From assembly GCF_006345805.1 (NCBI RefSeq), contig NC_042999.1, positions 112,716,001-112,780,000 on the forward strand: a stretch of DNA of 64,000 nt, read 5' to 3'. The translations under genes were made by a program, and so were the position numbers. The notes beneath the pieces were generated by a model. The model did not search any database, was not told the origin of the DNA, and was given only the letters and a program-made list of their open reading frames with translations. The first letter of the stretch is position 1, and every line of letters starts with the position of its first letter. This document shows positions 12,553-63,932 of this stretch, piece after piece. This DNA comes from Octopus sinensis. Lineage: Eukaryota.

Positions 12553-14478
12553 TCATCATCATCATCATCATCATTTAGCGTCCGCTTTCCATGCTAGCAT
12601 GGGTTGGACGGGTCAACTGGGGTCTGTGAAGCTGGAAGGCTTCGTCAGGCCCAGTCAGATCTGGCAGTGTTTCTACGGCTGGATGCCCTTCCTAACGCCA
12701 ACCACTCCGCGAGTGTAGTGGGTGTTTTTTACGTGCCACCTGCACAGGTGCCAGACAGAGCTGGCGAACGGCCACGAACGGATGGTGCTTTTACGTGTCA
12801 CCGGCACGGGGCCAGGCGATGCTGGCAACGGACACGAACGGATGGTGCTTTTACGTGCCACCGACACAGGGCCAGACAGAGCTGGCAAACGGCCACGAAC
12901 GGACGGTGCTTTTACGTGTCACCGGCACGGGGGCCAGCCGAGGCTGGCAACGGACGCAAACGGATGGTGCTTTTACGTGCCACCGACACGGTTGCCAGAC
13001 AGAGCTGGCAAACGGCCACGAACGGACGGTGCTTTTATGTGTCACCGGCACGGGGGCCAGCCAAGGCTGGCAACGGACACGAACGGATGGTGCTTTTACG
13101 TGCCACCGACACAGGGCCAGACAGAGCTGGCAAACGGCCACGAACGGACGGTGCTTTTACGTGTCACCGACACGGGGCCAGGCGAGGCTGACAACGAACA
13201 CGAACACGAACGGATGGTGCTTTTACGTGCCACCGACACGGGGGCCAGGCAGAGCTGGCAAACGGCCACGAGCGAATGGTGCTTTTACGTATCACCGGCA
13301 CGGGTGCCAGACGAGGCTGACAGCGGACACGAACGGATGGGTCACTTAACCCCTGCTTTCTGATATATGATTTGATTTTGATTGTTCTCACTGGTCTTGC
13401 CGGGTCTTCTCACGCACAGCATACTTCCATAGGTCTCGGTCTCTGGTCATTTCCTTGGTGAGACCTAGAGTTCGAAGGTCGTGCTTCACCACCTCGACCC
13501 AGGTTTTCCTGGGTCTACCTCTTCCACAGGTCCCCTCAACTGCCAGGGTGTGGCACTTTTTCACACACCTATCTTCATCCATTCTCACCACATGACCATA
13601 CCAGCGCAATCGTCTCTCTTGCACACAACATCTGATGCCTCTTAGGTCCAACTTTTCTCTCAAGGTACTTACACTCTGTCGACTATGAACACTGACATTA
13701 CACATCCAACGGAGCATACTAGCTTCATTTCTCGCGAGCTTACGCATGTCCTCAGCAGTCACGGCCCATGTTTCACTGCCATGTAGCATGGCTGTTCGTA
13801 CACATGCATCATACAGTCTGCCTTTTACTCTGAGCGAGAGGCCTTTAGTCACCAACAGAGGTAAGAGCTCCCTAAACTTTGCCTAGGCTATTCTTACTCT
13901 AGCCATTACACTTTCAGCACACCCACCCCCACTACTGACTGGGTCACCAAGATAACGGAAGCTATCAACTACTTCTAGTTTTTCCCCCTGGAAAGTGACG
14001 GAAGTTGTTTTCTGCAGATTTTCAGAGGTTAATGCTCCCGAGCATCTGCCACATACAAAAACCATCTTCCTAGTTAGCCTTCCTATGACATTGCTGCACC
14101 TCTTATGTGTCCATAGCTTACACTTGGTGCATCTTATAGAGTTTCTACCTACACCTTTTCTACAGATTGAGCAGGGCCATCTACCTGAAGGCGTTTGTGA
14201 TTTGTCTACCTTCCTACTTATTAGGACTTTGGTTTTAGCTAGGTTGACTCTAAGGCCCTTCGATTCTAAACCATGCTTCCACACCTGAAACTTCTTCTCC
14301 AGTTCTGATAATGACTCAGCAATTAGAGCAAGGTCATCAGCATAGAGGAGCTCCCAGGGGCATCCTGTCTTGAATTCCTCCATTATTGCCTGGAGGACTA
14401 TGATAAATAGGAGGGGGCTGAGGACTGAGCCTTGGTGGACCCCTACCTCTACCCGGAATTCTTCACTGTACTCATTGC
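12553..14478 (-). mobile_element. Young 5'-truncated RTE-clade LINE (RT C-terminal half, 3' UTR with tandem array, (GAT)n tail)
   Basis: GVHQGSVLSPLLF, LLYADDL, DSFRYLG and RGRPRKTW motifs. One continuous frame from 14478 to 13388, broken only by a TGG>TAG stop at 13883-85. Ends in (ATG)n. Confidence 0.92.
12741..13340 (+). repeat. GC-rich tandem array of ten ~60-bp units alternating between two variants (A/B dimer)
   Basis: GGTGCTTTTACGTG(C/T)CACC recurs about every 60 bp, alternating GCCAGACAGAGCTGGCAAACGGCCACG and GCCAG(C/G)CGAGGCTGGCAACGGACACG units. Confidence 0.95.
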
Positions 14479-15315
14479 CAAAATATATATATATATATGA
14501 ATGTATATATATGTGCGTGTGTACATATATGTATACATGTATATATGTGTATGTGTGTATATATGTATGTATATAGCGATAATATGTGTATATAGATATG
14601 CACATATAGTCTCTATGTGGTAAGAAGTTTGCATCCTAATCATATGGTTTCAGATTCAGTCCCACTGTGTGGTACCTTGGGTAAGCATCTTCTGCTATAG
14701 CAGCCCCAAGCTAACCAAAACCTTCTTGATAGAAACAAGCTAATCTAGTGAATATGTATATCTAGCATTTAAGAGGCTATGCACTTCTCACCAGCATGTC
14801 TGCAGAGTCATCAACATTTCACAGAGGCATGAAACCAATGGTAGCATTCTGACCAGTTATATGTCATTACCTATAATATATATATATTAATCAATCATCA
14901 TAGAGTAGATAGAGTAATAAATGTGTTGAATCCAGACCTGAAGATTGGGAATATGTCGATCTAATTGAGTATTGAAACTAGAGACCTTATATCACAAAAA
15001 TACCGACTTACTGTCATGAAACATGTGTTGTCTTTAAAATGGAAAGTATGAGATTCTGAATAGATATAGTAAGTATCATATTTAATATTTTATGGCTTGG
15101 TCGGGTATAATATCTTTAAATATTGATTGAGTTGAGGATGGTTCTGTCTCTAAAACTAATTTTATATATATATATTATGTAGAAGGGTTAAAATCCAAGC
15201 TGTGTACTCTTGAAGTTCATGTGCTTGTTCTAATATTTCAAATGTTATATTTGTGTGAGGTATGTATAAGAGTTGAAAATTCTGGAAAATATTTTTGGCA
15301 GAGTAATTATATCTC

Positions 15316-17894: not shown

Positions 17895-19990
17895 AACTTA
17901 ACTTAGATAACTTAGATTGGTTTTGGCTATTATCAGCCCAGGACATGACTAATGCAATAGCACCACCTGGAAAAGTCTTTTAATTAATTATTTTGGGACA
18001 CCATGGACCACTCAAGCAGAGAGTTGTTGTTGGCTGAGACATATCCAGGTTTAAGTGGCTTATCCTATATTTCCTGGAGGAATTTTACCAGGTACCACTT
18101 GAAAGTTGTTGGGTCTTTTTCTACTTTAATTTCTTTCAGGATAACATTGAAAAGAGCAGGACCATTTGCACTGAAGAAATTGTGTCACAATGTTCTTATG
18201 TGATGTGATCTCAACATTTGTAGGAGGCACATTGCACAGGGTCCTAGTCTTGGGTGAATTCTAAACATAATACTGATATCATTTGGATAATATTGGTGGA
18301 ATATTTTCCACATAGTGCAAATAATGTATCACTCACAATGGTATTGTAAAGAATAGAGCTTCAGCTGTTTAAGTCAAGCCCAATAATCAAGTCCTATCAT
18401 GCCATTTATTTTTTTAGTGATTGATCTTTGTGGCACTTTGGTCCTCATTATGTCTTGTTTTTTGTAGGGAGACCACAATGGGCAGCAGTATTTGAGGTGG
18501 GACCTAGCAAATGTGGTGAAGAGAAGGATGATGGTTTTATGATACCTAAATTGAAAAGTTCTGAAGATCTATGAGCACATTCTGTGGGCAACATCAACAT
18601 TTTTGTTGATGTGCACACTGCAGCTAAGGTAGCTGCTGACAATTACACCTAAGTCTCTGATATTATCCAACAGTTCAAGTAGGTCTCCTGACAGTAGTGT
18701 ATATGGTTGTTTGAGTGTGCCCTCTTTTCCAAAGTGGATGAGCTCAAATTTTTCTTTGTTCAACTGCATACTGTTTTTTTTTTGTACCCACTAGGTTACT
18801 GCACAAAGATCTGATTGAAGCATTGTTCAATCATATGCTCCCTTAATGACTTTCTGAAGTTTAGAGTCATCTGCAAATATTTTAATGGTGCTATGTTCAA
18901 TGGAATCTGCAATATCATTGACATAGACAATAAAAAGAAGTGGACCCAGCACAGTACCCTGTGGGATTCCATTGATGACTTTTGCTGGTCTTGAGTGGAT
19001 GCCATCAACCACAACATGCTGGGTCCTGTTTGTTAGGAAATACTTAATCCATTGAAGTAACTTTCCACCAACTCCAGCATTGGATAGTTTCCTTAACAGT
19101 GTATTGAGGTCGACTCTGTCAAAGACCATGCTGAAATTAAGGTATATGACATCAGCATTGGTGAAGGAGCTGTGTTAGACAGTCCCTCCCACCACGCCAT
19201 GCTGGTTGCAATTGAGATGATTTTGCTTTTGCTCTAGGAAAGCTGTTATTCTTGATCTCAACACTCTCTCAAATATTTTGATATGTGAGGTGAGTGAGAT
19301 TGGATGATAGTTTACTGGGGGCAATTTATTCCTTTTTTTTAAAGATAGTAACGACTAACTGGGAGAGAAGGTTTTTTATTCTCTTGATGAGTGCTTTTCA
19401 TTGTTTTGGAATCCTGCATTTATTGTTATTTATGAGGCGTGAGGGCGTATGTTTTGAGCACATGTGGGTGACTGTCTTCAAATAGGTGCCATGCATTTGA
19501 GTTTGTTATGGTATTAGAGGAAGCCAGAGTGAAGGACCAGCCCACTTGCAATAAGTCTTCAGTGATCGCACTCCAGTTTGACTTGTATAAATTCATATTA
19601 TCAAATGGATGCACTGGAGTTAGTGATTTATGCCAAATTTTTGGATGCTGAAGATTGATTGAGGTTACAGAGTACTATGTCATGATCAGACAGGAGGGTT
19701 CTTTCCACTGTGATGTTATGGATACTGTTAGCATGATTGCTTAACGCTAGATCCAAGACACTTTGGTTGTTTCTGGTTGGTTCATGGATAAGTTGTGACA
19801 GGAAAAAATTATCCATAAATTTGAAAAGTAACTCCACTACTGCTTTGTCTGAGCTTGAGGTGAAGGTTCTTGGTCTAACAATATTAGTGGACCAATCTAC
19901 AGAGGGTAGGTTAAAGTCGCCCATTATCAGAATATTTCCTGGATTACATTGCAGGAGGAAAGATTTGATCTTCTCAAGGCACTCTTGAAA
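17895..19990 (-). mobile_element. Degraded CR1/Jockey-group LINE (endonuclease remnant, RT, 3' UTR)
   Basis: MGDFNLPSVDW, GIPQGTVLGPLLFIVYVND, IFADDSKL and NIRDLGVIV motifs in frameshifted pieces; (ATCTAAGTT)n-like tail near 17900. Confidence 0.9.
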
Positions 19991-21136
19991 ATAGTGTAAG
20001 AGTGCTTACTATATAGAGAAGAATTTTAATCTGATTAGAATTAACTTGTACCAGTTATACACTGAGTACATATAATGAATTAATCAAGAAGTATAAAAGT
20101 TGTCCTCATTTCTATGTGGGTCATCATAGGAGGGTTTGGATGTTGTTCATGGCAACAGGTAGTAGAATCTTTCCACAACCACCACCAAACATTACTCTCT
20201 ATCCCTGCTGCTACTACAACTACTACTAAAATCATTATACTACACCCCCAGCACTCTATTTCTCTTGCTTCTAAACCCCTCTCTTCTGCTACTGCTGCTA
20301 CATCAACACCAACTATTCCCACCACCAGCATTATAGAATCCCACCCCACTACTACTACTATTACTACCACTGCCTCAACTACTGCTGCTGTTGTTGCTAG
20401 TTTATTAGGGTTCACCTCTTCTGATGGTTTGTAATAATAGAAGCCTCAAAGCTTGCATTGACAAATGAATTTATCATTCTAGTATAATCTGTAAAATTCA
20501 AGAAAGGCAAATAGTAGTGTGTGTTAGTGAGAGTTGTTCCCAAGAGGAGGTTCCTTCTTTGTTTTTTTTTACATAGTAAGAAAGAGAGGGGAGTGCTCCT
20601 TCATAGTCACTTGACCTGCTCAATATTCACCTCCTTTGACAAACTCCATATCTCTTTTAAATGGGAATGAGTTTAAGTCCTATGTACACCATATAAATAA
20701 ACAAATGACCATAGCTACATCTGATGTTGATTTTTGAGTGTCTGACAAAATGCCTTATGTTATTTTTTCCAGTTATTTTACATTCCAAGTTCAAATTTCA
20801 CTGAGATCAACTTTGCCTTTAAGCCTTTCAGAACAGATAAAATAAAGTACCAGTTAAATAATGGTGCCTAATCAATCAACTAAGCCCTCCCACTAAATTA
20901 TAAAGAATAACAATAATATCAATACAAATCGTCATTATTATTATTGTAGTATTTACATTCTGAGTTCAAATTCACCAAGGTGAACTTTGCATTTCATCAT
21001 TCCAGGGTCAATAAAACATAATGAAATAATTACTAGGGTTGATTTAATCAACTATCCCCCTCCCTACAAATTTCTGGCATTGTGCCTATATTAGGAAGGA
21101 CTATGGTGGTGGTGGTGGTGGTGGTGGTGGTAGTAA

Positions 21137-42984: not shown

Positions 42985-44732
42985 ATCATAACATGCTTGA
43001 ATGTTTGAATGATGACAGGACGAAAGTGAGAACAGGTGTTGTATGTCTATCAAGCGAACATGAAAACCTTCTTCTTTTCAGGCACTAAATAACATCTCCA
43101 CTCCCCATGCCTCTTCCCACATTCCTTTCCCAGATTTTAGAGTTGGCACTGTCAATGTAGGCACACTGAAAGGTAGGTCTAGTGAGATTGTAGAGATGCT
43201 TGAACAGAGACGTGTTGATGTATGCTGCATGCAAGAGGTAAGGTGGAGAGGAGTTTCAGCCAGGGTCCTCGCAGGCAAGGCACATAAGTATAAAATCTTC
43301 TGGAAATGTAACAGTGATGGAGTAAAGGGTATAGGCATACACCTCATAGAGAAACAGGTGGATAAGGTCATAGAGGTGGTCAGGGTATGCGATAGAGTAC
43401 TTAAGCTTAGGCTAGTCCTGCAGAATAGTATAGCTACAATTATCTCTGCCTACACCCCACAAGCAGGCCTACTAAATGATCAGAAGGACCACCTTTATGA
43501 TACCCTTCTACAAGCTACCTCAAAGACGAGTAGTAATGATCTCATCTTTGTGGCTGGAGATTTTTATGGTCATGTTGGACAGCAATCCAGTATCTTCCAT
43601 GGTGTTCATGGGGCCCATGAAATTGGTTCCCGAAAGGAAGAGGGAACTAGGCTACTGGAGTTCTGTGATGCATGCAACCTAATAATCTGCAACACTAACT
43701 TCAAGAAGCCAGACAGCCACCTGATAACCTATCAATCAGGCGACTCTGCTAGCCAGATTGATTTCATCCTCACCAGACATACAATGTTACAAGGTTGCTC
43801 TTTAATACAAAGACCCTCCCTGGTGAAGAATGTACCCCTCAGCGTAGATTAATAGTGACTTTAGACTTGAGGCCAGAAGGATGTCAAGTAGCAGACATTT
43901 CCAGAAAAAAAGTATTTGGAAGCTAAAGAACCCTTCTCATGGTCACAGATTTAGGGACATCCTCATTGAGAAATTTGATGAGAGGGAGGAGCTACAGACT
44001 CCGGACATAGAGGGTAACTGGAAATTCCCGTGGGACAGCTTACTGAGCACCACAGACCAAATCTGTAGCTGGTGCAAAGTCCCTGCCAGACCTAGAGTAA
44101 CGTGGTAGTGGAATAATATGGTAGACAAGGCCATTAGAGCAAAGAAACAAGCCTGGAAAGTCTGGAAGAGTTGGAGTAGCAGGGAACTGTACCAGATAAC
44201 CAGAAGGGAGGCTGGGCAACAGGTATACATAGCCAAGGACGAAGCAGAAAAGAAGTTTGCCAATGTCCAGTGACGTGAGGACCAAAGAACTGAAGTATTT
44301 CAGATTGCAAGACAGTATGTGAGAGAAAATTGTGATGTCACAGGAGAGAAATGTGTCCGCATGGATGATGGTGTACTTGCTTTTAATGATTCTGAAAAGA
44401 AATAAGGTTGGAGAAGCCATATAGAAGGCTGCTAAATGTGGAGAATGAATGGGAGGAAGAGAGCCTGCCAAATGTTGACCCAGTAGAGGGACCAGCTACC
44501 CAAATAGATAGCACCCTGGTAGATAAAGCAATTAAAGATATGAAGTCAGGAAAAGCCCCCAGCCCATCAGGAATCACTGCTGAGATGCTTAAAATATCTG
44601 GTGGTGTGGGTCATGGCCCTGTCACCCATATTGTAAACCAGGTAGTTCACGAAGGAGTCATACCCAATGGCTGGCGTAGCAGCATCATAGTCAACTGCTA
44701 CAAAGGTAAAGGTGATGCTTTAGATAGAACAT
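42985..44732 (+). mobile_element. RTE LINE 5' portion (AP endonuclease plus linker), 3'-truncated
   Basis: VGTVNVGTLKGRS, CCMQEVRW, ISAYTPQ, VAGDFYGHVG, SQIDFIL and GKAPSPSGITAEMLK motifs; several stops and frameshifts. Confidence 0.9.
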
Positions 44733-45067: not shown

Positions 45068-47779
45068 TGTAACGAACTTAATGTGAGTGAATATCTTCGT
45101 GCACTTTTGGGGTGCACAAAGCAATCACTCACTAGCCGTTGCTTTAATAATCCAGAATCTCTACTAGTCAGAAACAACAAGACGCAGACGTAAAATATAC
45201 ATATAACTACTTTATTCTCTTTCTTGGTAAACAATAACAATACTGGTGTTATCTGATGTCCTTGATTCTGGGCGCGCAAGGCTGAAAGTTAATAGATTGT
45301 AATATTTACAATCTTCAGCCCAAAAACAGAAAAGGATTCAAGATGGCGTCGAACAATGGAGACGATGTTGGTCTGCAACAATTTGGTAAGGACTGCTAGA
45401 AGCTAGTTCCAACGGAGAGAAAATATATCGCGTGACGTCGCCTTCAATCGCTGGGTCCCAAGTCCTCGATGACTGCTGCTAGTGGTCAAACGTTCTACGA
45501 CCCCCTTGCCTCGCTAACTACCACGATAGGCAAGCGGGTCGTGCTTCCGGTGGTTCGCGCATGCGCGAGAGGGCCCTTCCTTTCTCTGCCTTGGTAAAGG
45601 CACCAACACGTGCGAAATACAAATGGACGGCGCGCGCACCGTTATAATATCACTACAAGGCTCCCCTCCAGTGCGTACGCACGAAAGGAAACTTATTGTA
45701 GTGACTGCAAAACTCAAGGTGGACACCAGATAACCAAATAGCACACAATAATATAATGGCAAAATTTATAACATACACAAGAAATTTACTAAAGGAAAAA
45801 GAGAAAAAATACTCAATGAGCAAAATCAAGAGTGCATGCATGAAAGTGTATACGTCACAAAGTATAGAGCCTTCCGCTGTAGGAAGCGGAGGGAATGCAA
45901 AACTCACAGTTAATGAACCTAGGCGAAATTAAAATCCAACTTCTCTAAAGGTGGTTGATCCTGCGAAATAGCAGTTAAATCAATTGCTGCAGGAGAGGAA
46001 ATGGAATTGGCAGAAGCTCGCTAGTAACACAAAAGGCAAAGGTGCAAACATGCTGGTGTGATGCGCGACACAGATAATTTTCTGTTAATTACGTGACCAA
46101 CAGTGGTCTAACAGGGAAAAATAATTACGCCCATACATAGGCGCAGCGCATGTGAACATCTGACATTCTATGAGTTGGGAAAAGAATTAGGCTAACGCAC
46201 GTGTTGCAAAAACAAGGCAAGTACATGTGCGAAGCAAAAAACACATGAAATGCAATGGTGCTTGCCAGACCGAAAAAACAGCAAATGAATATGCCAGTGG
46301 TTAAGCGATTATATGCTTCGTTCGTATAGGAACAAAAGTATGACATGCTGGCGCGTTATAATGGACAAACAACCCTCTCTATGTATACGTGACCGACCTA
46401 GGGTCTATAGAAATGAGGGGTGTCCACAAAAGGCAAATTTAGCATGGAACAAACAAGCGAGAAAAGCATGTGTGACGTATGTATGTGAGAGAGAGCATTT
46501 ATGTGTGTGTACGTGTGTGCGACAGAAATACATACAAGGTGAATGCGAGCAAAATATAAAAACAGCGCATAGAAAAAATGTCTCTCATGTGCTATTCCAG
46601 ACAAGAGTTAATTTACCAGTCTGTAATAGCCTGATGTACAATAGCAGTTCGTTCCGTAACAGAAATGTTGAAATCACAAAATGCAGATGCCAGTTGAACA
46701 CATATCGTGTAGCGGTTGTGGCTTCAATGCTGTGACAGGTTAACTGGAACAGAAGAATCTCGTAGATAGACGGTGCTGTTTATCCTTGGTGTGCATATGC
46801 ACAAACGGCAAGTGGACCAAACTTCCGCGAGTTGCTATGTACATCTTGGTGGAGGTCGACGGTGTTGAAAGGCGACGGTGGTGGAAGGCGACTGTAGTGG
46901 ACTTGGGACAACATCGTTCTTAGTGATGATGGCGACGACGTGAAGTAGACAGACGACGATGATGATGGCGAAGGCAGAGAAATAGCATCGATGATGTGAT
47001 GGCGTCCGTCATCATGTTGAAGAATAAAAGGGCTCCTTCTATAACGGTCCGAGAGGACGGAAACAAATCGTCGAAAGTTGATGCGTAGAGTTAAATCGTG
47101 TTCCGACTTCGCAGAAAAACTGGATTTTTTTTTGTTGTTAAGTGATCTCTGGTTTTAGACCAGAATCACGTCGGGAGGTCACCACTGTAACGAACTTAAT
47201 GTGAGTGAATATCTTCGTGCACTTTTGGGGTGCACAAAGCAATCACTCACTAGCCGTTGCTTTAATAATCCAGAATCTCTACTAGTCAGAAACAACAAGA
47301 CGCAGACGTAAAATATACATATAACTACTTTATTCTCTTTCTTGGTAAACAATAACAATACTGGTGTTATCTGATGTCCTTGATTCTGGGCGCGCAAGGC
47401 TGAAAGTTAATAGATTGTAATATTTACAATCTTCAGCCCAAAAACAGAAAAGGATTCAAGATGGCGTCGAACAATGGAGACGATGTTGGTCTGCAACAAT
47501 TTGGTAAGGACTGCTAGAAGCTAGTTCCAACGGAGAGAAAATATATCACGTGACGTCGCCTTCAATCGCTGGGTCCCAAGTCCTCGATGACTGCTGCTAG
47601 TGGTCAAACGTTCTACGACCCCCTTGCCTCGCTAACTACCATGATAGGCAAGCGGGTCGTGCTTCCGGTGGTTCGCGCATGTGCGAGAGGGCCCTTCCTT
47701 TCTCTGCCTTGGTAAAGGCACCAACATGCGCGAAATACAAATGGACGGCGCGCGCGCGCACCGTTATAATATCACTACA
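45068..47779 (-). mobile_element. Complete non-autonomous LTR retrotransposon (TRIM/LARD-like, 2712 bp), tRNA-Trp primed
   Basis: LTRs 45068-45657 (590 bp) and 47186-47779 (594 bp), both TG...CA, about 99% identical. ATAT target-site duplication at 45064-67 and 47780-83. Minus-strand PBS TGGTGACCTCCCGACGTGATT next to 47185; PPT GGAGGGGAGCCT at 45658-69. No gag/pol ORF in the 1.5-kb interior. Confidence 0.93.
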
Positions 47780-49667
47780 ATATAAAAAAAAATTACATGT
47801 TGACATTTGCGGGTGATGTAATACTATTGTAAAAGACAGAGACAAGGAATTTTAGACACACATAGACATACATTTATGCATGTCAGTTGTCTCATATGTA
47901 TATGTATGTGTAGATGTGTGTGTGTGTGTGTTTAATGTATCTAATGCAAAAACACACTCAGACATACACTTACACACATACACTCATATACAAAATGTGA
48001 TGTTGTCATCGTCATCCTCATGGTTGAGCAGTTTGCAAATGCATAGGGAACAGACAGAATGCATGTCAGTCATCACATATATGTGTGTTTAATAATGTAT
48101 CTTACGTGGAAACAGACACACTCACAGACACATACACACTCATATACAAAATGTAACATTGTCATCGTCGATGTGATATAAAATGTCCTGTAATATAGCT
48201 GACTATAGAAAGATTATCTCTAAAATGTTATATTGTTTCAATCAAAGTGAAAAAAAGAATTACATGTTGATACTCATGGGATGTAATGATTTGATTTGGT
48301 CGAGCCATTTGAGAAGGCATAGGGAATTGACAGACAGGCAGACAAAGGTTTTATATATATATATATATAGGTAAGGAATGTTTTCGGGATTTTTTTCTTT
48401 TAATTTCATAGTTGTATACCAATATTATTGGCAGAGGTGTTAAACATGCACCACATCCCTTTACCCTTTACATAAAAAAAAAAACAAACAGAAGGTGGCA
48501 TGCATGTTTAACATCTCTACTGAATCATCCAAGGAGAAATAACATATTTACTTTATGAACAGCACCATAGACAGTTTTACTGATTATTTTACTCAAAAGT
48601 AAGTAAATTCAAGTGATAGAAGGAACTACATTCAATAAATTGAAATTAACTGTTTTACTAACTGAAGGTTTTAATAACTCTGTTGCTATTTTTTTATTAC
48701 CATTTCTGTTTTATTTTAGTCTCTCCATCTTAGTCTTTTATTTGCTGTTACTTTTTATCACTCAGTCCAGCTATTTCCAGTAGGTTAAGCGGTCACTTAC
48801 AATTTCCTTAAGAGAGCCAGATAGGGCATTCAATGTATTAGACAGACAATATGTTGTCTGTTTTTCTAGATGCTCATCTGTTTTAAATGTACCAATTATG
48901 ACCATCACATCCATTGGGGGGGGGGGCTAAATACAGTGTTCTCCACCCAACCTCACCTTGTAACTGTTTTTAATGATGCATAATTTTGCATGTGCAAAAG
49001 GTTCAAGAAATCTATTTTCTGCTTGGAAAATTTTTCAGTTTTAGATCTTAAACTGGGATATCCAAGCATCCTTGATAGAGCATTTGAGAGAAGTATGAAT
49101 GCCACAGCTGCATTTCCCCATCACTATAATATCCTTTCCCTTGTAACCTCCAGAGAAATTGTAAGATACCAACTTCTGTTTTGATTCAAGAATATATATT
49201 TTATTGTTGCTTATGGTATTTAGGTCAAATAGGTCAAACCCTGATCAAGCAGAAAATTTATCGCAGGCATTCTAGTCAACCATCTTGTCTTTCCCTTTTA
49301 TTTTTAGTTGTAGTCATCTGAGATTGCATTATCCAATATTAAATAATGACGTATTCTCATTTCATATAAAGGATCATTTGGTATAATCATACAGCCAAAT
49401 ATTCTTGGCTTTGAATAAAGTTTGCTGATCTGTCCATCTTAGGCTGGCATTAATAGAATGGTTTGTTCACTTAAGCATTGCTTAATTGTTTGAATAAATA
49501 TCAATGTTAAGGTTTGCTAGATTCAAATTGAGTATATGAAAAATATACAGGAATCTTTATCTATAATTGATTTTGATTTAACTTTTTTTTTCAGCTTAAT
49601 GAAACATTGTTATATAGCAAGAACATAATGCTAATATATTTTCTTATTGTATATCTTTTCAGTCAAA

Positions 49668-50966
49668 ATGAGTTTAATGGATGAATTAGTATCAGCAGGG
49701 GTTGACTCAAATGAGTTTTTGGGCAATCCTCTGAAGTATGACGATTTTGTTGCAACAAATAATTTGGATGATTCCTCTTTGTCACATTCAGTTTGTGAGG
49801 ACTTTACAGTGGACTTCACTGACATGAAAGATATTTACCCTGGCAGTAGATGTAAAAATTTATATGGTAATGTTGATACAACTAACAATAATAATTCTTT
49901 GTTTGAAAACTGTACCATGAATTTGGAGCAAGAACTTGAGCAAGCAGTGACTTTAACTGGTTCCTCAATGGCAACTACTTCAAACTTGGTTACTAGTATT
50001 AAAGACCATGATGGAGATAATATTGGTAATGATGTTACCAATAATAGTAATGACCATGGAGATAATGAAATTGACAACAATCATAACAGTGATTATGGGG
50101 ATGATGGCTCCAAATTCTTATGTGGAAATTTAGTTGATGAATATGATGTTACTGCAGAGACAGACAAAGATATCTCGAGTGTTGTAAATAACTTCAGTCT
50201 TGAAAGAAACATGGAAAAAGAATGTACTTTGATAAAGGATGAAATTAATGATGGAAACAGTTTGGGAAGTCATCTTATTGATACAGAAAAGACAAGACTT
50301 TCTACTGAAATTGCTGTTGATGTTGATATGACAGAGAGCCCCACTAAAATTACCAATGATGTGGATATGATAAAGACTAGGTCCCCTACCAAAATTGACC
50401 TTGATGTGGATAGGATAAAGACTGAATCCTCTACAGAAATTGACATTGATGTGGATATGATAAAGACCAGGTCCCCTACTGAAATTGACCTTGATATGGA
50501 TAGAATAAAGACTGAATCCTCTACAGAAATTGACATTGATGTCGATATGATAGAGACTGAATCCCCTGTCAAAAATTCTAACACTATAAATAGTTTTGCT
50601 GCTGAAGAAACTCTCAATGCTAGTATAAAGACAGAGCCAGCTTACAAAGTTACCGTTGACTGTAACAATGCAAACAGTGTGACAATGTCATCTATAAAGA
50701 GCGAGACTGACCATACAAATAAAAGTGTAGTTGTACAATCAGCACAGGATTCACAGTTAGAGGCCTGTGAATCATTTGAAGATTTATATCTGCAAGAAAA
50801 GTTTTTAAAGAAAGAAAGAGAAGTGGATTCTTTAAGAAAGCAGTTAGATGATAAACAAAAAGGGATTCATCATGCTGTGAATTTTGGTAAGCAACTTCTT
50901 GAAGAAAATGAGGAACTCAAAGAAAAAGTGCACAAACTTGAGCAGAAAATGATTACAATTGATGAG
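49668..50966 (+). CDS. SPDL1: Spindly coding exon 1 (433 codons): acidic low-complexity N-terminal extension plus start of coiled coil with CC1 box
   Basis: Acceptor ttttcAG at 49661-62, ATG at 49668, donor GAG|GTAATG at 50967. The C-terminal part EVDSLRKQLDDKQKGIHHAVNFGKQLLEENEEL aligns from memory with human Spindly ITNLRCRLKEAEEERLKAAQYGLQLVESQNEL. Confidence 0.85.
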
Positions 50967-51726
50967 GTAATGTATTCTTTAGATAATCATGAATAAAGGC
51001 ATGAGTTTGCAGTACTGAAAGTATATAGATGCTAGTAAATATACTCATTTTCTACATGCATACAAGTGCATGTATATATTAGTATGTAAATATTAGCATG
51101 TAGTTGCATGCTGAGTTATATATGTTATAATTTTAGCATCAGGTGGTATATAACAGATTTAAATATAATACTGTGATTTAATCATTCACTAAATACTATT
51201 ATCCATTCACTCAATTACTTTCTACCATTTTCAAATATAGTAAAAAAAATCAGGTCAAATCTTAGCAAAGCATATTCTATACTGTTGGTAAAACTATTGC
51301 ATGTGTGTACATATATATATATGTATATATAGTGTGTAGCTTTCACCTGTTGACTTAAAGACTAGATGTACTTTTACATTGAATTCTTTACAGTTTTTTT
51401 CAATTTCAGTTACTTGATTTTTAGACTTGTTTCTATTACTTTATTTTTTTTAACACTCTCAGAAGGAATTTTTGTCAATAATTTCAATTTATCAAAATTT
51501 TCTCTGTGCACTATACTACATTTGTGAGTCTATCATATTTGTATTTAGTAAGTAGAATGCTCTTCTGAACCATATTATTGATATTCATTACATTCTCTGT
51601 GTATGTATTTGTATGTGAATATAAATATACATAAAATATAGGGTAGTGAGTTTTTTTAATAGAAATTTCACTACCATTGGCCTAGCATGTATAAAAAGTT
51701 AATAGACAGCATATTCTCAATATGAA

Positions 51727-53946: not shown

Positions 53947-54108
53947 GAACTGAAAAATGAGATACATTCTACAAAATTGAAGTTAGAATCCAAAGAGTAC
54001 ATGGAAAAGCAATACAATGAAGAAATTTCTCTGCTCCAAAATGAAATAACTCAATTTAAAACAGAGGTGGATTCATACCAGAAACAAGAAGCTACTTTGA
54101 AAAGAGAA
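53947..54108 (+). CDS. SPDL1: Spindly coding exon 2 (54 codons, ELKNEIHSTK...EATLKRE), coiled coil
   Basis: ttgcAG acceptor, GTAAGT donor at 54109, 162 nt open in phase 0, heptad-like composition. Confidence 0.85.
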
Positions 54109-56651: not shown

Positions 56652-56846
56652 TTGAGAAACAAAGATGACTTACTTGAACAGTCAAATTTAAAGGAAGAAC
56701 AATTAACTGCAGCAATTAAAAATTTAGAAAAACTACTACTTGAGAAAGCTGAAGAAGTTTCACATTATCCATCTCAAAGTTTATGTGATGATAATCAACA
56801 GCAAGTTGTACTGGAGAAAGAGGTGTTAGAACTTCAAACTGAATGT
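56652..56846 (+). CDS. SPDL1: Spindly coding exon 3 (65 codons, LRNKDDLLEQ...LELQTEC)
   Basis: AG at 56650-51 (weak pyrimidine tract but preceded by ~80 nt with no AG), GTAAGT donor at 56847, 195 nt in phase 0, coiled-coil composition. Confidence 0.8.
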
Positions 56847-57584: not shown

Positions 57585-57734
57585 ACAAATTTGAAAATTA
57601 AAATTACCAGCAGTCATGCTAACACAAATCGAGTGGAGGAGGAGTTGTTGAGGGTTAAAAGAAGACTTGATGAAAAACAGCTAGAATATGAAGAAGTAAG
57701 AAGTGAAATGAACTCCTATCAAAAAACTCTTGAG
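57585..57734 (+). CDS. SPDL1: Spindly coding exon 4 (50 codons, TNLKIK...YQKTLE)
   Basis: ctttacAG acceptor after a (CT)n tract, GTATGC donor at 57735, 150 nt in phase 0. Confidence 0.85.
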
Positions 57735-63821: not shown

Positions 63822-63932
63822 GTGGAAGATCGCCGAATTTCTGTTGAAAAAACATTAATGGCTCTACAAGAAAATTACCAAGTCTTGAAAGAGAAACATA
63901 ATTTGGAAAAGCAACAAAATTATAAACTCAAA
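63822..63932 (+). CDS. SPDL1: Spindly coding exon 6 (37 codons, VEDRRISVEKTLMALQENYQVLKEKHNLEKQQNYKLK); gene continues beyond the window
   Basis: Completes GNSLFSE|VEDRR; resembles human VEDRRAAMERQLISMKVKYQSLKKQ. AG at 63820-21, GTATGG donor at 63933. Confidence 0.92.

Follow-up and report, generated by a model that had tools for sequence, protein, structure and literature searches.

What is a tandem array of 15-residue units doing ahead of the first coiled coil of Spindly, a kinetochore adaptor of dynein? The CC1 box of activating adaptors such as Spindly engages the dynein light intermediate chain and normally lies at the extreme N-terminus. In a 64-kb window of the Octopus sinensis genome (64,000 nucleotides of contig NC_042999.1, positions 112,716,001 to 112,780,000 of the forward strand; all coordinates below are those of the window), the Spindly gene carries several hundred residues, including the array, before this box. 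A first, sequence-only reading took the array for a possible CDK-tunable scaffold of SUMO acceptors and SUMO-interacting motifs (SIMs) at the kinetochore corona. Our analysis points to a different account. The array would be best described as a coding minisatellite, with 15 residues per unit, in a lineage-specific acidic extension encoded by the same exon as the CC1 helix. It turns over by whole units, or by a two-unit dimer in O. sinensis, and its sequence seems weakly constrained. It may act as a flexible acidic spacer with a variable cluster of proline-directed (CDK1-type) phosphosites, whose phosphorylation in mitosis would adjust the charge of the adjoining CC1 region and perhaps also how accessible it is. 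For this account as a whole, a weakly constrained coding minisatellite in a spacer that carries phosphosites, we see an even chance. The descriptive part (the repeat, its coding status, the gene, the restriction to one lineage among the sampled taxa, the turnover, the fate of the motifs and the lack of confident structure) is observed and we hold it with high confidence. That the S-P sites are phosphorylated with a regulatory effect is a tentative proposal from the sequence, and one we would lean against if it were taken alone.

Structure of the array

The array occupies 50283–50573 on the plus strand and consists of about 6.5 units of 45 bp (15 residues). Two degenerate units, TEKTRLSTEIAVDVD and MTESPTKITNDVDMI, form its upstream end (50283–50372). 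They are followed by KTRSPTKIDLDVDRI (50373–50417), KTESSTEIDIDVDMI (50418–50462), KTRSPTEIDLDMDRI (50463–50507), a second copy of KTESSTEIDIDVDMI (50508–50552) and the truncated last unit ETESPVK (50553–50573), all read in frame. Tandem Repeats Finder (TRF) reports 50357–50567 as 4.7 copies of a 45-bp period with 80% matches; the equivalent reading of the same interval is 2.2 copies of a 90-bp period with 92% matches and a score of 355. The central four units thus form two 90-bp dimers (50373–50462 and 50463–50552) that are 93% identical. The sequence-only reading had described 45-bp units arranged as a 90-bp dimer at 50290–50572, and TRF and translation return its peptides exactly as written. 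Its dimer structure stands; only the dimer starts that it gave (50371 and 50461) are displaced, trivially, from the codons, which begin at 50373.

The two dimers differ at 6 of 90 bases. Two of these differences are replacements, K242E, which removes the +3 lysine of an SPTK site, and a valine to methionine change; the other four are synonymous, a share with a probability of about 0.04 by our own arithmetic if chance made one change in four synonymous. No second locus with the 45-bp unit was found within the 64-kb window, and since the unit is unique there, an origin of the array as a dispersed repeat or transposon was ruled out. The antisense strand across the array is free of stops for 185 codons (50133–50687, minus strand) and includes a 115-residue open reading frame at 50270–50617. 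Both antisense frames were taken as by-products of periodic sequence and rejected as a gene, no search for homologues having been made.

The array lies in Spindly

The array is part of the large first coding exon of Spindly (49663–50966, plus strand, residues 1–433), which has the acceptor ttttcag|TCAAA, an ATG at 49668 and the donor GAG|gtaatg. An exhaustive HMMER search, with the extension (367 residues) as query, retrieved XP_029633598.1 (P0003, 952 residues), protein Spindly isoform X1 of O. sinensis, to which the exon product is 100% identical. Both RefSeq and ENA models contain the N-terminal extension. The canonical coiled coil begins in the same exon (50769–50966, plus strand), as judged by homology and by a helix that AlphaFold2 (AF2) predicts for residues 370–432. 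Within it lies the CC1 box, AVNFGKQLLEEN (50874–50909, plus strand), aligned with AVEIGKALLEEN of Haliotis and AAEIGKALLEEN of Sinanodonta; it stands at the head of the first coiled coil and has the pattern A-[AV]-x-x-G with an LLEEN-type helix after it. The Spindly motif GNSLFSEVEDRR (GNSLFSE|VEDRR) follows about 230 residues after the CC1 box, split over the last two exons in the window, and the same string occurs in an invertebrate Spindly (P0002) and in those of Haliotis and shark. The protein ends in CAQQ, encoded outside the window, a CAAX-type tail that also ends Argonauta and shark Spindly and by its sequence would be a farnesylation box. Residues 386–832 are collinear with residues 6–455 of Haliotis (abalone) Spindly (33% identity, E 2e-51).

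The sequence-only reading had called the gene Spindly and placed the array in the protein. The call is correct given the CC1 box, the Spindly motif, the CAQQ tail, the identity with XP_029633598.1 and the collinearity with abalone, and the gene product also has a precomputed Pfam match to PF28219 ('Spindly'). A profile search from the C-terminal half retrieved Spindly proteins only. One of these, the shark orthologue, matches the human Spindly crystal structure 8ARF, so that the octopus protein is linked to this structure via the shark; a phmmer search of the octopus coiled-coil part against the PDB gave no match. A Pfam scan of the exon and the coiled-coil part, using a library without PF28219, gave only sub-threshold coiled-coil noise. 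Two word-indexed homologue searches returned one match each, a low recall probably caused by coiled-coil and low-complexity words swamping the candidates; the homologues used here come from the exhaustive HMMER search and the C-terminal-half profile.

The N-terminal extension

Homologue comparison, composition, AF2 and the ratio of nonsynonymous to synonymous substitution rates (dN/dS) together delimit an acidic N-terminal extension of residues 1–367 (49668–50768, plus strand). The octopods compared were O. sinensis, O. vulgaris, a close relative (Logan SRR11869385; genomic contig L001, protein P0001) and Argonauta hians (P0004). We use 'octopod-specific' with respect to the sampled taxa; the N-termini of squid, cuttlefish and Nautilus lie outside this sample (P0015 is a C-terminal transcript fragment only). 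The CC1 box is located within the first ~35 residues in Spindly of human, abalone (582 and 578 residues), freshwater mussels (574 and 575 residues), shark (~620 residues) and the invertebrate P0002 (529 residues), whereas the homologous start in O. sinensis is at about residue 368. The extension was not found in Haliotis, Sinanodonta or shark Spindly, and in a search of 1.84 billion representative proteins the true matches came from octopod Spindly alone; three further candidates (P0005–P0007) were rejected as low-complexity matches to unrelated repeat proteins.

In composition the extension is 20.7% D+E, 21% S+T and 10% N, with a net charge of −0.13 per residue. The AF2 run, which rested on a two-sequence alignment, gave a predicted local distance difference test score (pLDDT) below 50 for residues 1–368, compared with above 90 for helix 370–432. 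The genomic contig of the close relative aligns with the window from the upstream intron through the downstream intron and permits an estimate of constraint. By the method of Nei and Gojobori, dN/dS is 0.41 for the extension (dS ~0.23) and varies by segment: 0.28 for residues 1–105, 0.29 for 105–205, 0.50 in the array, 0.84 just after the array and 0.44 in the CC1 coil. All seven exon indels are of whole codons (1, 132, 4, 7, 7, 2 and 3 residues), while the flanking intron shows 37 gap columns in ~250 nt. Identity by codon position is 90.7/90.2/85.6%, and the introns are 84–88% identical.

These data bear on whether the extension belongs to the functional protein at all. If translation started at an internal methionine (e.g. 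that of MSSIKSE, residue 340), the frame ahead of it would serve as a 5' leader. The non-cephalopod Spindly proteins examined do begin ~20–30 residues before the CC1 box, and an available methionine lies ~28 residues ahead of the homologous start. We nevertheless regard such a start as highly improbable. The array frame is a stretch of 453 codons without a stop (49635–50993, plus strand), the longest non-transposon open frame in the window; at the GC content of ~31% around the array, its chance from base composition is ~1e-16 by our own arithmetic. Three further octopods have kept the frame open through many indels (dN/dS 0.28–0.5), and over the first 108 residues the identity to Argonauta is 51%. 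Upstream, a small 5' exon (47461–47503, plus strand; MASNNGDDVGLQQF, donor G|gtaagg), taken from the O. vulgaris model CAI9719836 (P0013), supplies an in-frame ATG in good context (A at −3, G at +4). That model reads ...QQFVK|MSLMDE, with the 5' exon joined to 49663 in frame. From the open frame, the whole-codon indels, dN/dS, the gene models and this exon we infer that the array is coding and not part of a 5' leader.

The first ~108 residues (49668–49991) are the best-conserved part of the extension, by both the identity to Argonauta and the dN/dS against the close relative, and contain the conserved strings EDFT(V/I)DFTDM, acidic and aromatic in character, and FEN(C/S)TMNLE(Q/K)EL. No homologues of this part were found outside octopod Spindly. 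Perhaps the extension functions through this end, which the array would tether. A 132-residue block that follows in the close relative (L001 454–860) is partly kept in Argonauta (P0004 residues ~105–240), the two sharing the string ILSLEE[ED]LS.

Turnover of the array in octopods

The Spindly-like protein of Argonauta hians (GAB1600604.1, 1408 residues, locus L005) is encoded with the same exon design as in O. sinensis, an acceptor ttttcag|TTAAAATG and a single 884-codon exon ending NIDE|gtaatt. An array is located at the same position and comprises 22.6 copies of 45 bp with 91% matches, its older units reading KTYSPNKTAIDMDLT and its amplified units KLCSPNKTATIEDMT. The Argonauta unit KLCSPNKTAIDMDLT and the O. 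sinensis unit are identical at 29 of 45 nucleotides, and their peptides are in register, with K-(T/L)-x-S-P-x-K followed by hydrophobic and acidic residues. Among the units, KTYSPNKTAIDMDLT is the counterpart of KTRSPTKIDLDVDRI in O. sinensis. Judged from the shared position, period and exon design and from the in-register units, the array is older than the Octopus–Argonauta split. O. vulgaris has the unit count of O. sinensis and differs by three substitutions, one of which turns SPTK into SPTE (first site). In the close relative only ~3 units are recognisable, so that copy number among octopods runs from ~3 to ~23. The close relative has in addition its own nested sub-repeat at L001 1244–1313 (24 bp × 2.9 copies, ETDIDVDG), giving two DIDVDG (DxDxDG-like) strings, which O. 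sinensis lacks. A calcium-loop reading of DxDxDG was rejected on inspection; O. sinensis has no glycine there and departs from the EF-hand pattern at position 4.

Variation in unit number is also seen within the O. sinensis annotation. RefSeq isoforms X2 (shorter by 15 residues) and X3 and X4 (shorter by 30 residues) differ from X1 solely by one or two array units (P0008, P0009 and P0011; 50357–50552). When all equivalent gap placements were enumerated, GT..AG borders were available only for the 90-nt gap of X3 (50381–50470). Since neither X2 nor X4 offers a canonical splice pair, X2–X4 are probably not splice forms; they would be repeat-number variants (variable number tandem repeat alleles) or artefacts of reverse transcription or alignment, and their labels as splice isoforms are probably wrong. 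Whichever explanation holds, the array behaves as an unstable minisatellite.

Such behaviour raises the possibility that the array is simply tolerated, a neutral coding minisatellite whose sequence has no specific task, be it in phosphorylation or in SUMO biology, and which slippage and unequal exchange regenerate, with selection acting only on length, charge and the open frame. We give this explanation a substantial probability, though short of even. It would account for copy numbers between ~3 and 22.6, for 'isoforms' that differ by whole units, two of whose three gaps cannot be drawn with canonical splice borders, for the dN/dS values (0.5 in the array, 0.84 just after it) and for the tolerance of a 132-residue deletion nearby. 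Unit duplication would also explain the motif enrichments described below. Pure tolerance is less easily reconciled with the dimers, where four of the six differences are synonymous, or with the retention between Octopus and Argonauta of the period, the position and the K-x-x-S-P-x-K half-unit while flanking old copies decayed.

S-P sites

Three things are kept across octopods: a repeat period of 45 bp, a location directly ahead of the CC1 helix, and the K-x-x-S-P-x-K core. This core is the sole unit feature common across lineages, and it is for this reason that we favour the reading of the array as a spacer with phosphosites. The full CDK consensus SPTK at S239 (50382–50393, plus strand; SPTE in O. 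vulgaris) is accompanied on the same strand by SPTK at 50337–50348, SPTE at 50472–50483 and SPVK at 50562–50573, found by motif scan. The sequence-only reading had named SPTK and SPVK as full CDK consensus sites, and the sequence bears this out. For each species' extension, 2000 composition-preserving shuffles gave the motif counts to be expected. The O. sinensis extension contains three [ST]-P-x-[KR] sites where 0.11 are expected; together with SPTE they cluster in residues 224–302, a region with pLDDT below 50. O. vulgaris has two such sites, the close relative one, and Argonauta 20 (0.74 expected). Units with S-P are present in the arrays of all four octopods, and they make up 22 of the 23 in Argonauta. 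Accessible S-P-x-K sequences in disordered parts of mitotic proteins are commonly CDK1 substrates, a general point that also speaks against pure neutrality.

Several observations weigh against the phosphosite reading. The core codons of Argonauta, TCC CCC AAC AAA, are identical among units even at synonymous positions, as expected of recent copies. As the units were copied recently from one or two founders, the 20 Argonauta sites amount to one or two independent observations. Variation within this array comprises 42 nonsynonymous against 5 synonymous changes, distributed evenly among codon positions (23:26:17), and with that excess and evenness there is no sign of purifying selection inside it, as the neutral explanation would have it. 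Half of the O. sinensis core units lack the proline (SSTE). The +3 lysine is labile, being SPTK in O. sinensis and SPTE in O. vulgaris, and it changes between the dimers as well. In the O. sinensis/vulgaris lineage the 132-residue block described above has been cleanly deleted in frame (window 49984–49994, residues ~107–110), and much of the extension is therefore dispensable. The prediction of disorder is that of the two-sequence AF2 run. Finally, addition of CDK1, MPS1 and Aurora B to human RZZ–Spindly produced no gain of dynein–dynactin binding in vitro (PMC9481740). On the side of the phosphosite reading stand the points raised above against pure tolerance, together with the array dN/dS of 0.5.

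Other phospho-dependent motifs fit less well. A MELT-like (KNL1) reading was rejected, as the O. sinensis array has one loose VDMT, in a degenerate unit, and Argonauta has such a string in 4–5 of 23 units, four of these strings lying in its oldest units. No PP2A-B56 (LxxIxE), Polo-box (S-[ST]-P) or 14-3-3 pattern was seen in the units when these were checked by eye.

Spindly is autoinhibited via contacts that involve the CC1 region (PMC9481740). An acidic gate dosed by CDK1 can be imagined, in which 3 to more than 20 sites, once phosphorylated in mitosis, would govern access to CC1 or relieve the autoinhibition and so set lineage-specific dynein thresholds. We consider a gate of this kind unlikely.

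SUMO and SIM motifs

The O. sinensis extension is rich in the strict SUMO acceptor pattern psi-K-x-E, with five sites against 0.43 expected; none of the 2000 shuffles reached five. Two of the sites lie in the array at unit junctions, IKTE at K251 (50415–50426, plus strand) and its second copy at K281 (50505–50516), and three lie outside the array core (IKDE 50232–50243, IKTE 50625–50636 and IKSE 50694–50705, plus strand). The sequence-only reading had noted that IKTE fits psi-K-x-E with acidic residues downstream and that SIKTEP and SIKSET follow the array; all of this is present in residues 1–367, with SIKTEP at residues 319–324 and SIKSET at 342–347. It does not follow that the sites are independent. 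The two array IKTE sites are copies of each other and SIKTEP...VTVD resembles an old degenerate unit, so that the enrichment counts are inflated by shared descent. Short motifs of the SUMO and SIM type arise readily by chance, and here they have been multiplied through duplication.

Among relatives, the array acceptors are not retained. The close relative has two psi-K-x-E sites (0.57 expected), none of them within the array, which reads IKTR, IKDR and IKID at these places. The 816-residue extension of Argonauta has one (1.06 expected), and none of its 23 units contains the pattern. The close relative does retain LIKDE and SIKTEP, which lie outside the array core. At a dS of only ~0.23, the loss of the array IKTE in this species argues against the acceptor role proposed for it.

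The proposed SIMs fare similarly. The classical SIM core is V/I-x-V/I-V/I or V/I-V/I-x-V/I/L (PMC2808386), and none occurs in the O. sinensis array; the extension has one (VVV, residue 354, outside the array) against 7.3 expected, the close relative two against 7.45 and Argonauta one against 6.83. Parallel and antiparallel SIM patterns of the type in the Eukaryotic Linear Motif (ELM) resource give no match in the O. sinensis extension (3.7 and 2.4 expected). In the other octopods' extensions the only string of ELM type is ILSLEE[ED]LS, in the block deleted from O. sinensis. What the O. sinensis extension does possess is alternating hydrophobic/acidic pentamers (IDIDV, IDLDV, IDVDM etc.), of which seven overlapping examples occur against 0.17 expected. 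Their spacing is that of the unusual SUMO-2 SIM of CoREST1, with its hydrophobic core at positions 1, 3 and 5 (PMC2808386). The pentamers are absent from the close relative and occur in 4 of the 23 Argonauta units, all among the oldest. IDIDV and IDLDV, put forward as SIM-like, therefore match the CoREST1 type of spacing and not the classical consensus, and relatives have not kept them.

For a polySUMO/SIM scaffold at the corona, with IKTE as acceptors, IDIDV/IDLDV as SIMs and tuning by SPxK, the points in favour are then the enriched acceptors with acidic residues downstream in both O. sinensis and O. vulgaris (five sites in each), the CoREST1-like pentamers and the conserved LIKDE and SIKTEP. 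Neither conservation nor the classical SIM definition supports the scaffold, no report of Spindly SUMOylation was found in the literature, and we judge it very unlikely. As acceptor and SIM strings are not kept in relatives, a self-associating SUMO network would at most be a trait of O. sinensis and O. vulgaris that finds no evolutionary support. The comparison of motif retention across the four octopods thus divides the sequence-only reading, the CDK-type S-P core being kept and the SUMO acceptor and SIM strings lost. A narrower variant, in which IKTE and ID(I/L)DV add a species-specific SUMO2 interaction in Octopus sensu stricto, e.g. toward corona partners, shares with the CDK1 gate the same low standing that we give the two jointly.

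Other features of the window

Downstream of the first coding exon, five further Spindly coding exons lie on the plus strand, all in phase 0 with AG/GT borders: 53947–54108, 56652–56846 and 57585–57734, which match P0003; 58228–58326, which ends with GNSLFSE, the first half of the Spindly motif; and 63822–63932, which starts with VEDRR, the second half. The gene runs past the end of the window.

The 5' exon has an identical copy at 45343–45385. Both copies are located in a direct duplication of ~595 bp (45068–45658 and 47186–47780) with 98.5% identity (100% over the first 300 nt), the copies being 2118 bp apart. It may be genuine, or it may have arisen in the assembly. Over 45.0–48.0 kb the observed/expected CpG ratio is ~1.0, compared with 0.07–0.25 in the flanks, and because of this ratio the region looks like a promoter CpG island. 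Open frames resembling retrotransposon endonuclease and reverse transcriptase occur at 43064–44731 (plus strand), 13391–14635 and 18572–20005 (minus strand) and 12598–13360 (plus strand), and a GC-rich (48%), internally repetitive block lies at ~12.5–13.4 kb. These are ordinary octopus repeat content.

Comparison with known systems

Compared with Spindly/SPDL1 (CCDC99; PF28219; 8ARF), the octopus protein is canonical from residue ~368 onward, in its CC1 box, motif spacing, basic C-terminal region and CAAX-type tail. It differs in the ~367 extra residues before the CC1 helix (816 in Argonauta), a considerable addition to a protein that has 605 residues in human (PMC9481740). Octopod Spindly, with its 370–820 acidic and, by prediction, fold-less residues ahead of the CC1 box, is in effect a natural experiment on the N-terminal freedom of an adaptor.

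In relation to known SUMO sites (negatively charged amino acid-dependent SUMOylation motifs, NDSM) and SIMs, the array IKTE fits psi-K-x-E with acidic residues, and IDIDV fits the CoREST1 type of spacing (PMC2808386). The array differs in having no classical SIM core, and orthologous arrays have kept neither string.

One of the two closest parallels is within Spindly itself. At its C-terminus, Drosophila Spindly bears four repeats of TPXKPQXKGTPVK, which contain seven CDK1 consensus sites and for which a role as a mitotic charge switch was proposed (Griffis et al. 2007, PMC2064361). Both cases are lineage-specific tandem repeats on Spindly with an [ST]-P-x-K in each unit. In the fly the repeats are basic, lie at the C-terminus and have 13 residues each, whereas those of octopods are acidic, lie at the N-terminus and have 15. 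As the repeat sequences are unrelated, the resemblance would be convergence at most; if the CDK1 gate were true, it would be convergence with the fly C-terminal TPxK repeats. KNL1 provides a second comparison, its arrays of MELT units having undergone recurrent rapid turnover (Tromer et al. 2015, PMC4558858). Here too a kinetochore protein carries disordered phospho-motif units that change quickly in number and sequence via unit amplification, although the O. sinensis array units have no M-[DE]-[ILVM]-[ST]. As it stands, the octopod array makes a modest evolutionary note rather than a new mechanism: after Drosophila it is the second instance in which Spindly has gained [ST]PxK repeats, and it is another example, beside KNL1, of rapid repeat turnover in kinetochore proteins.

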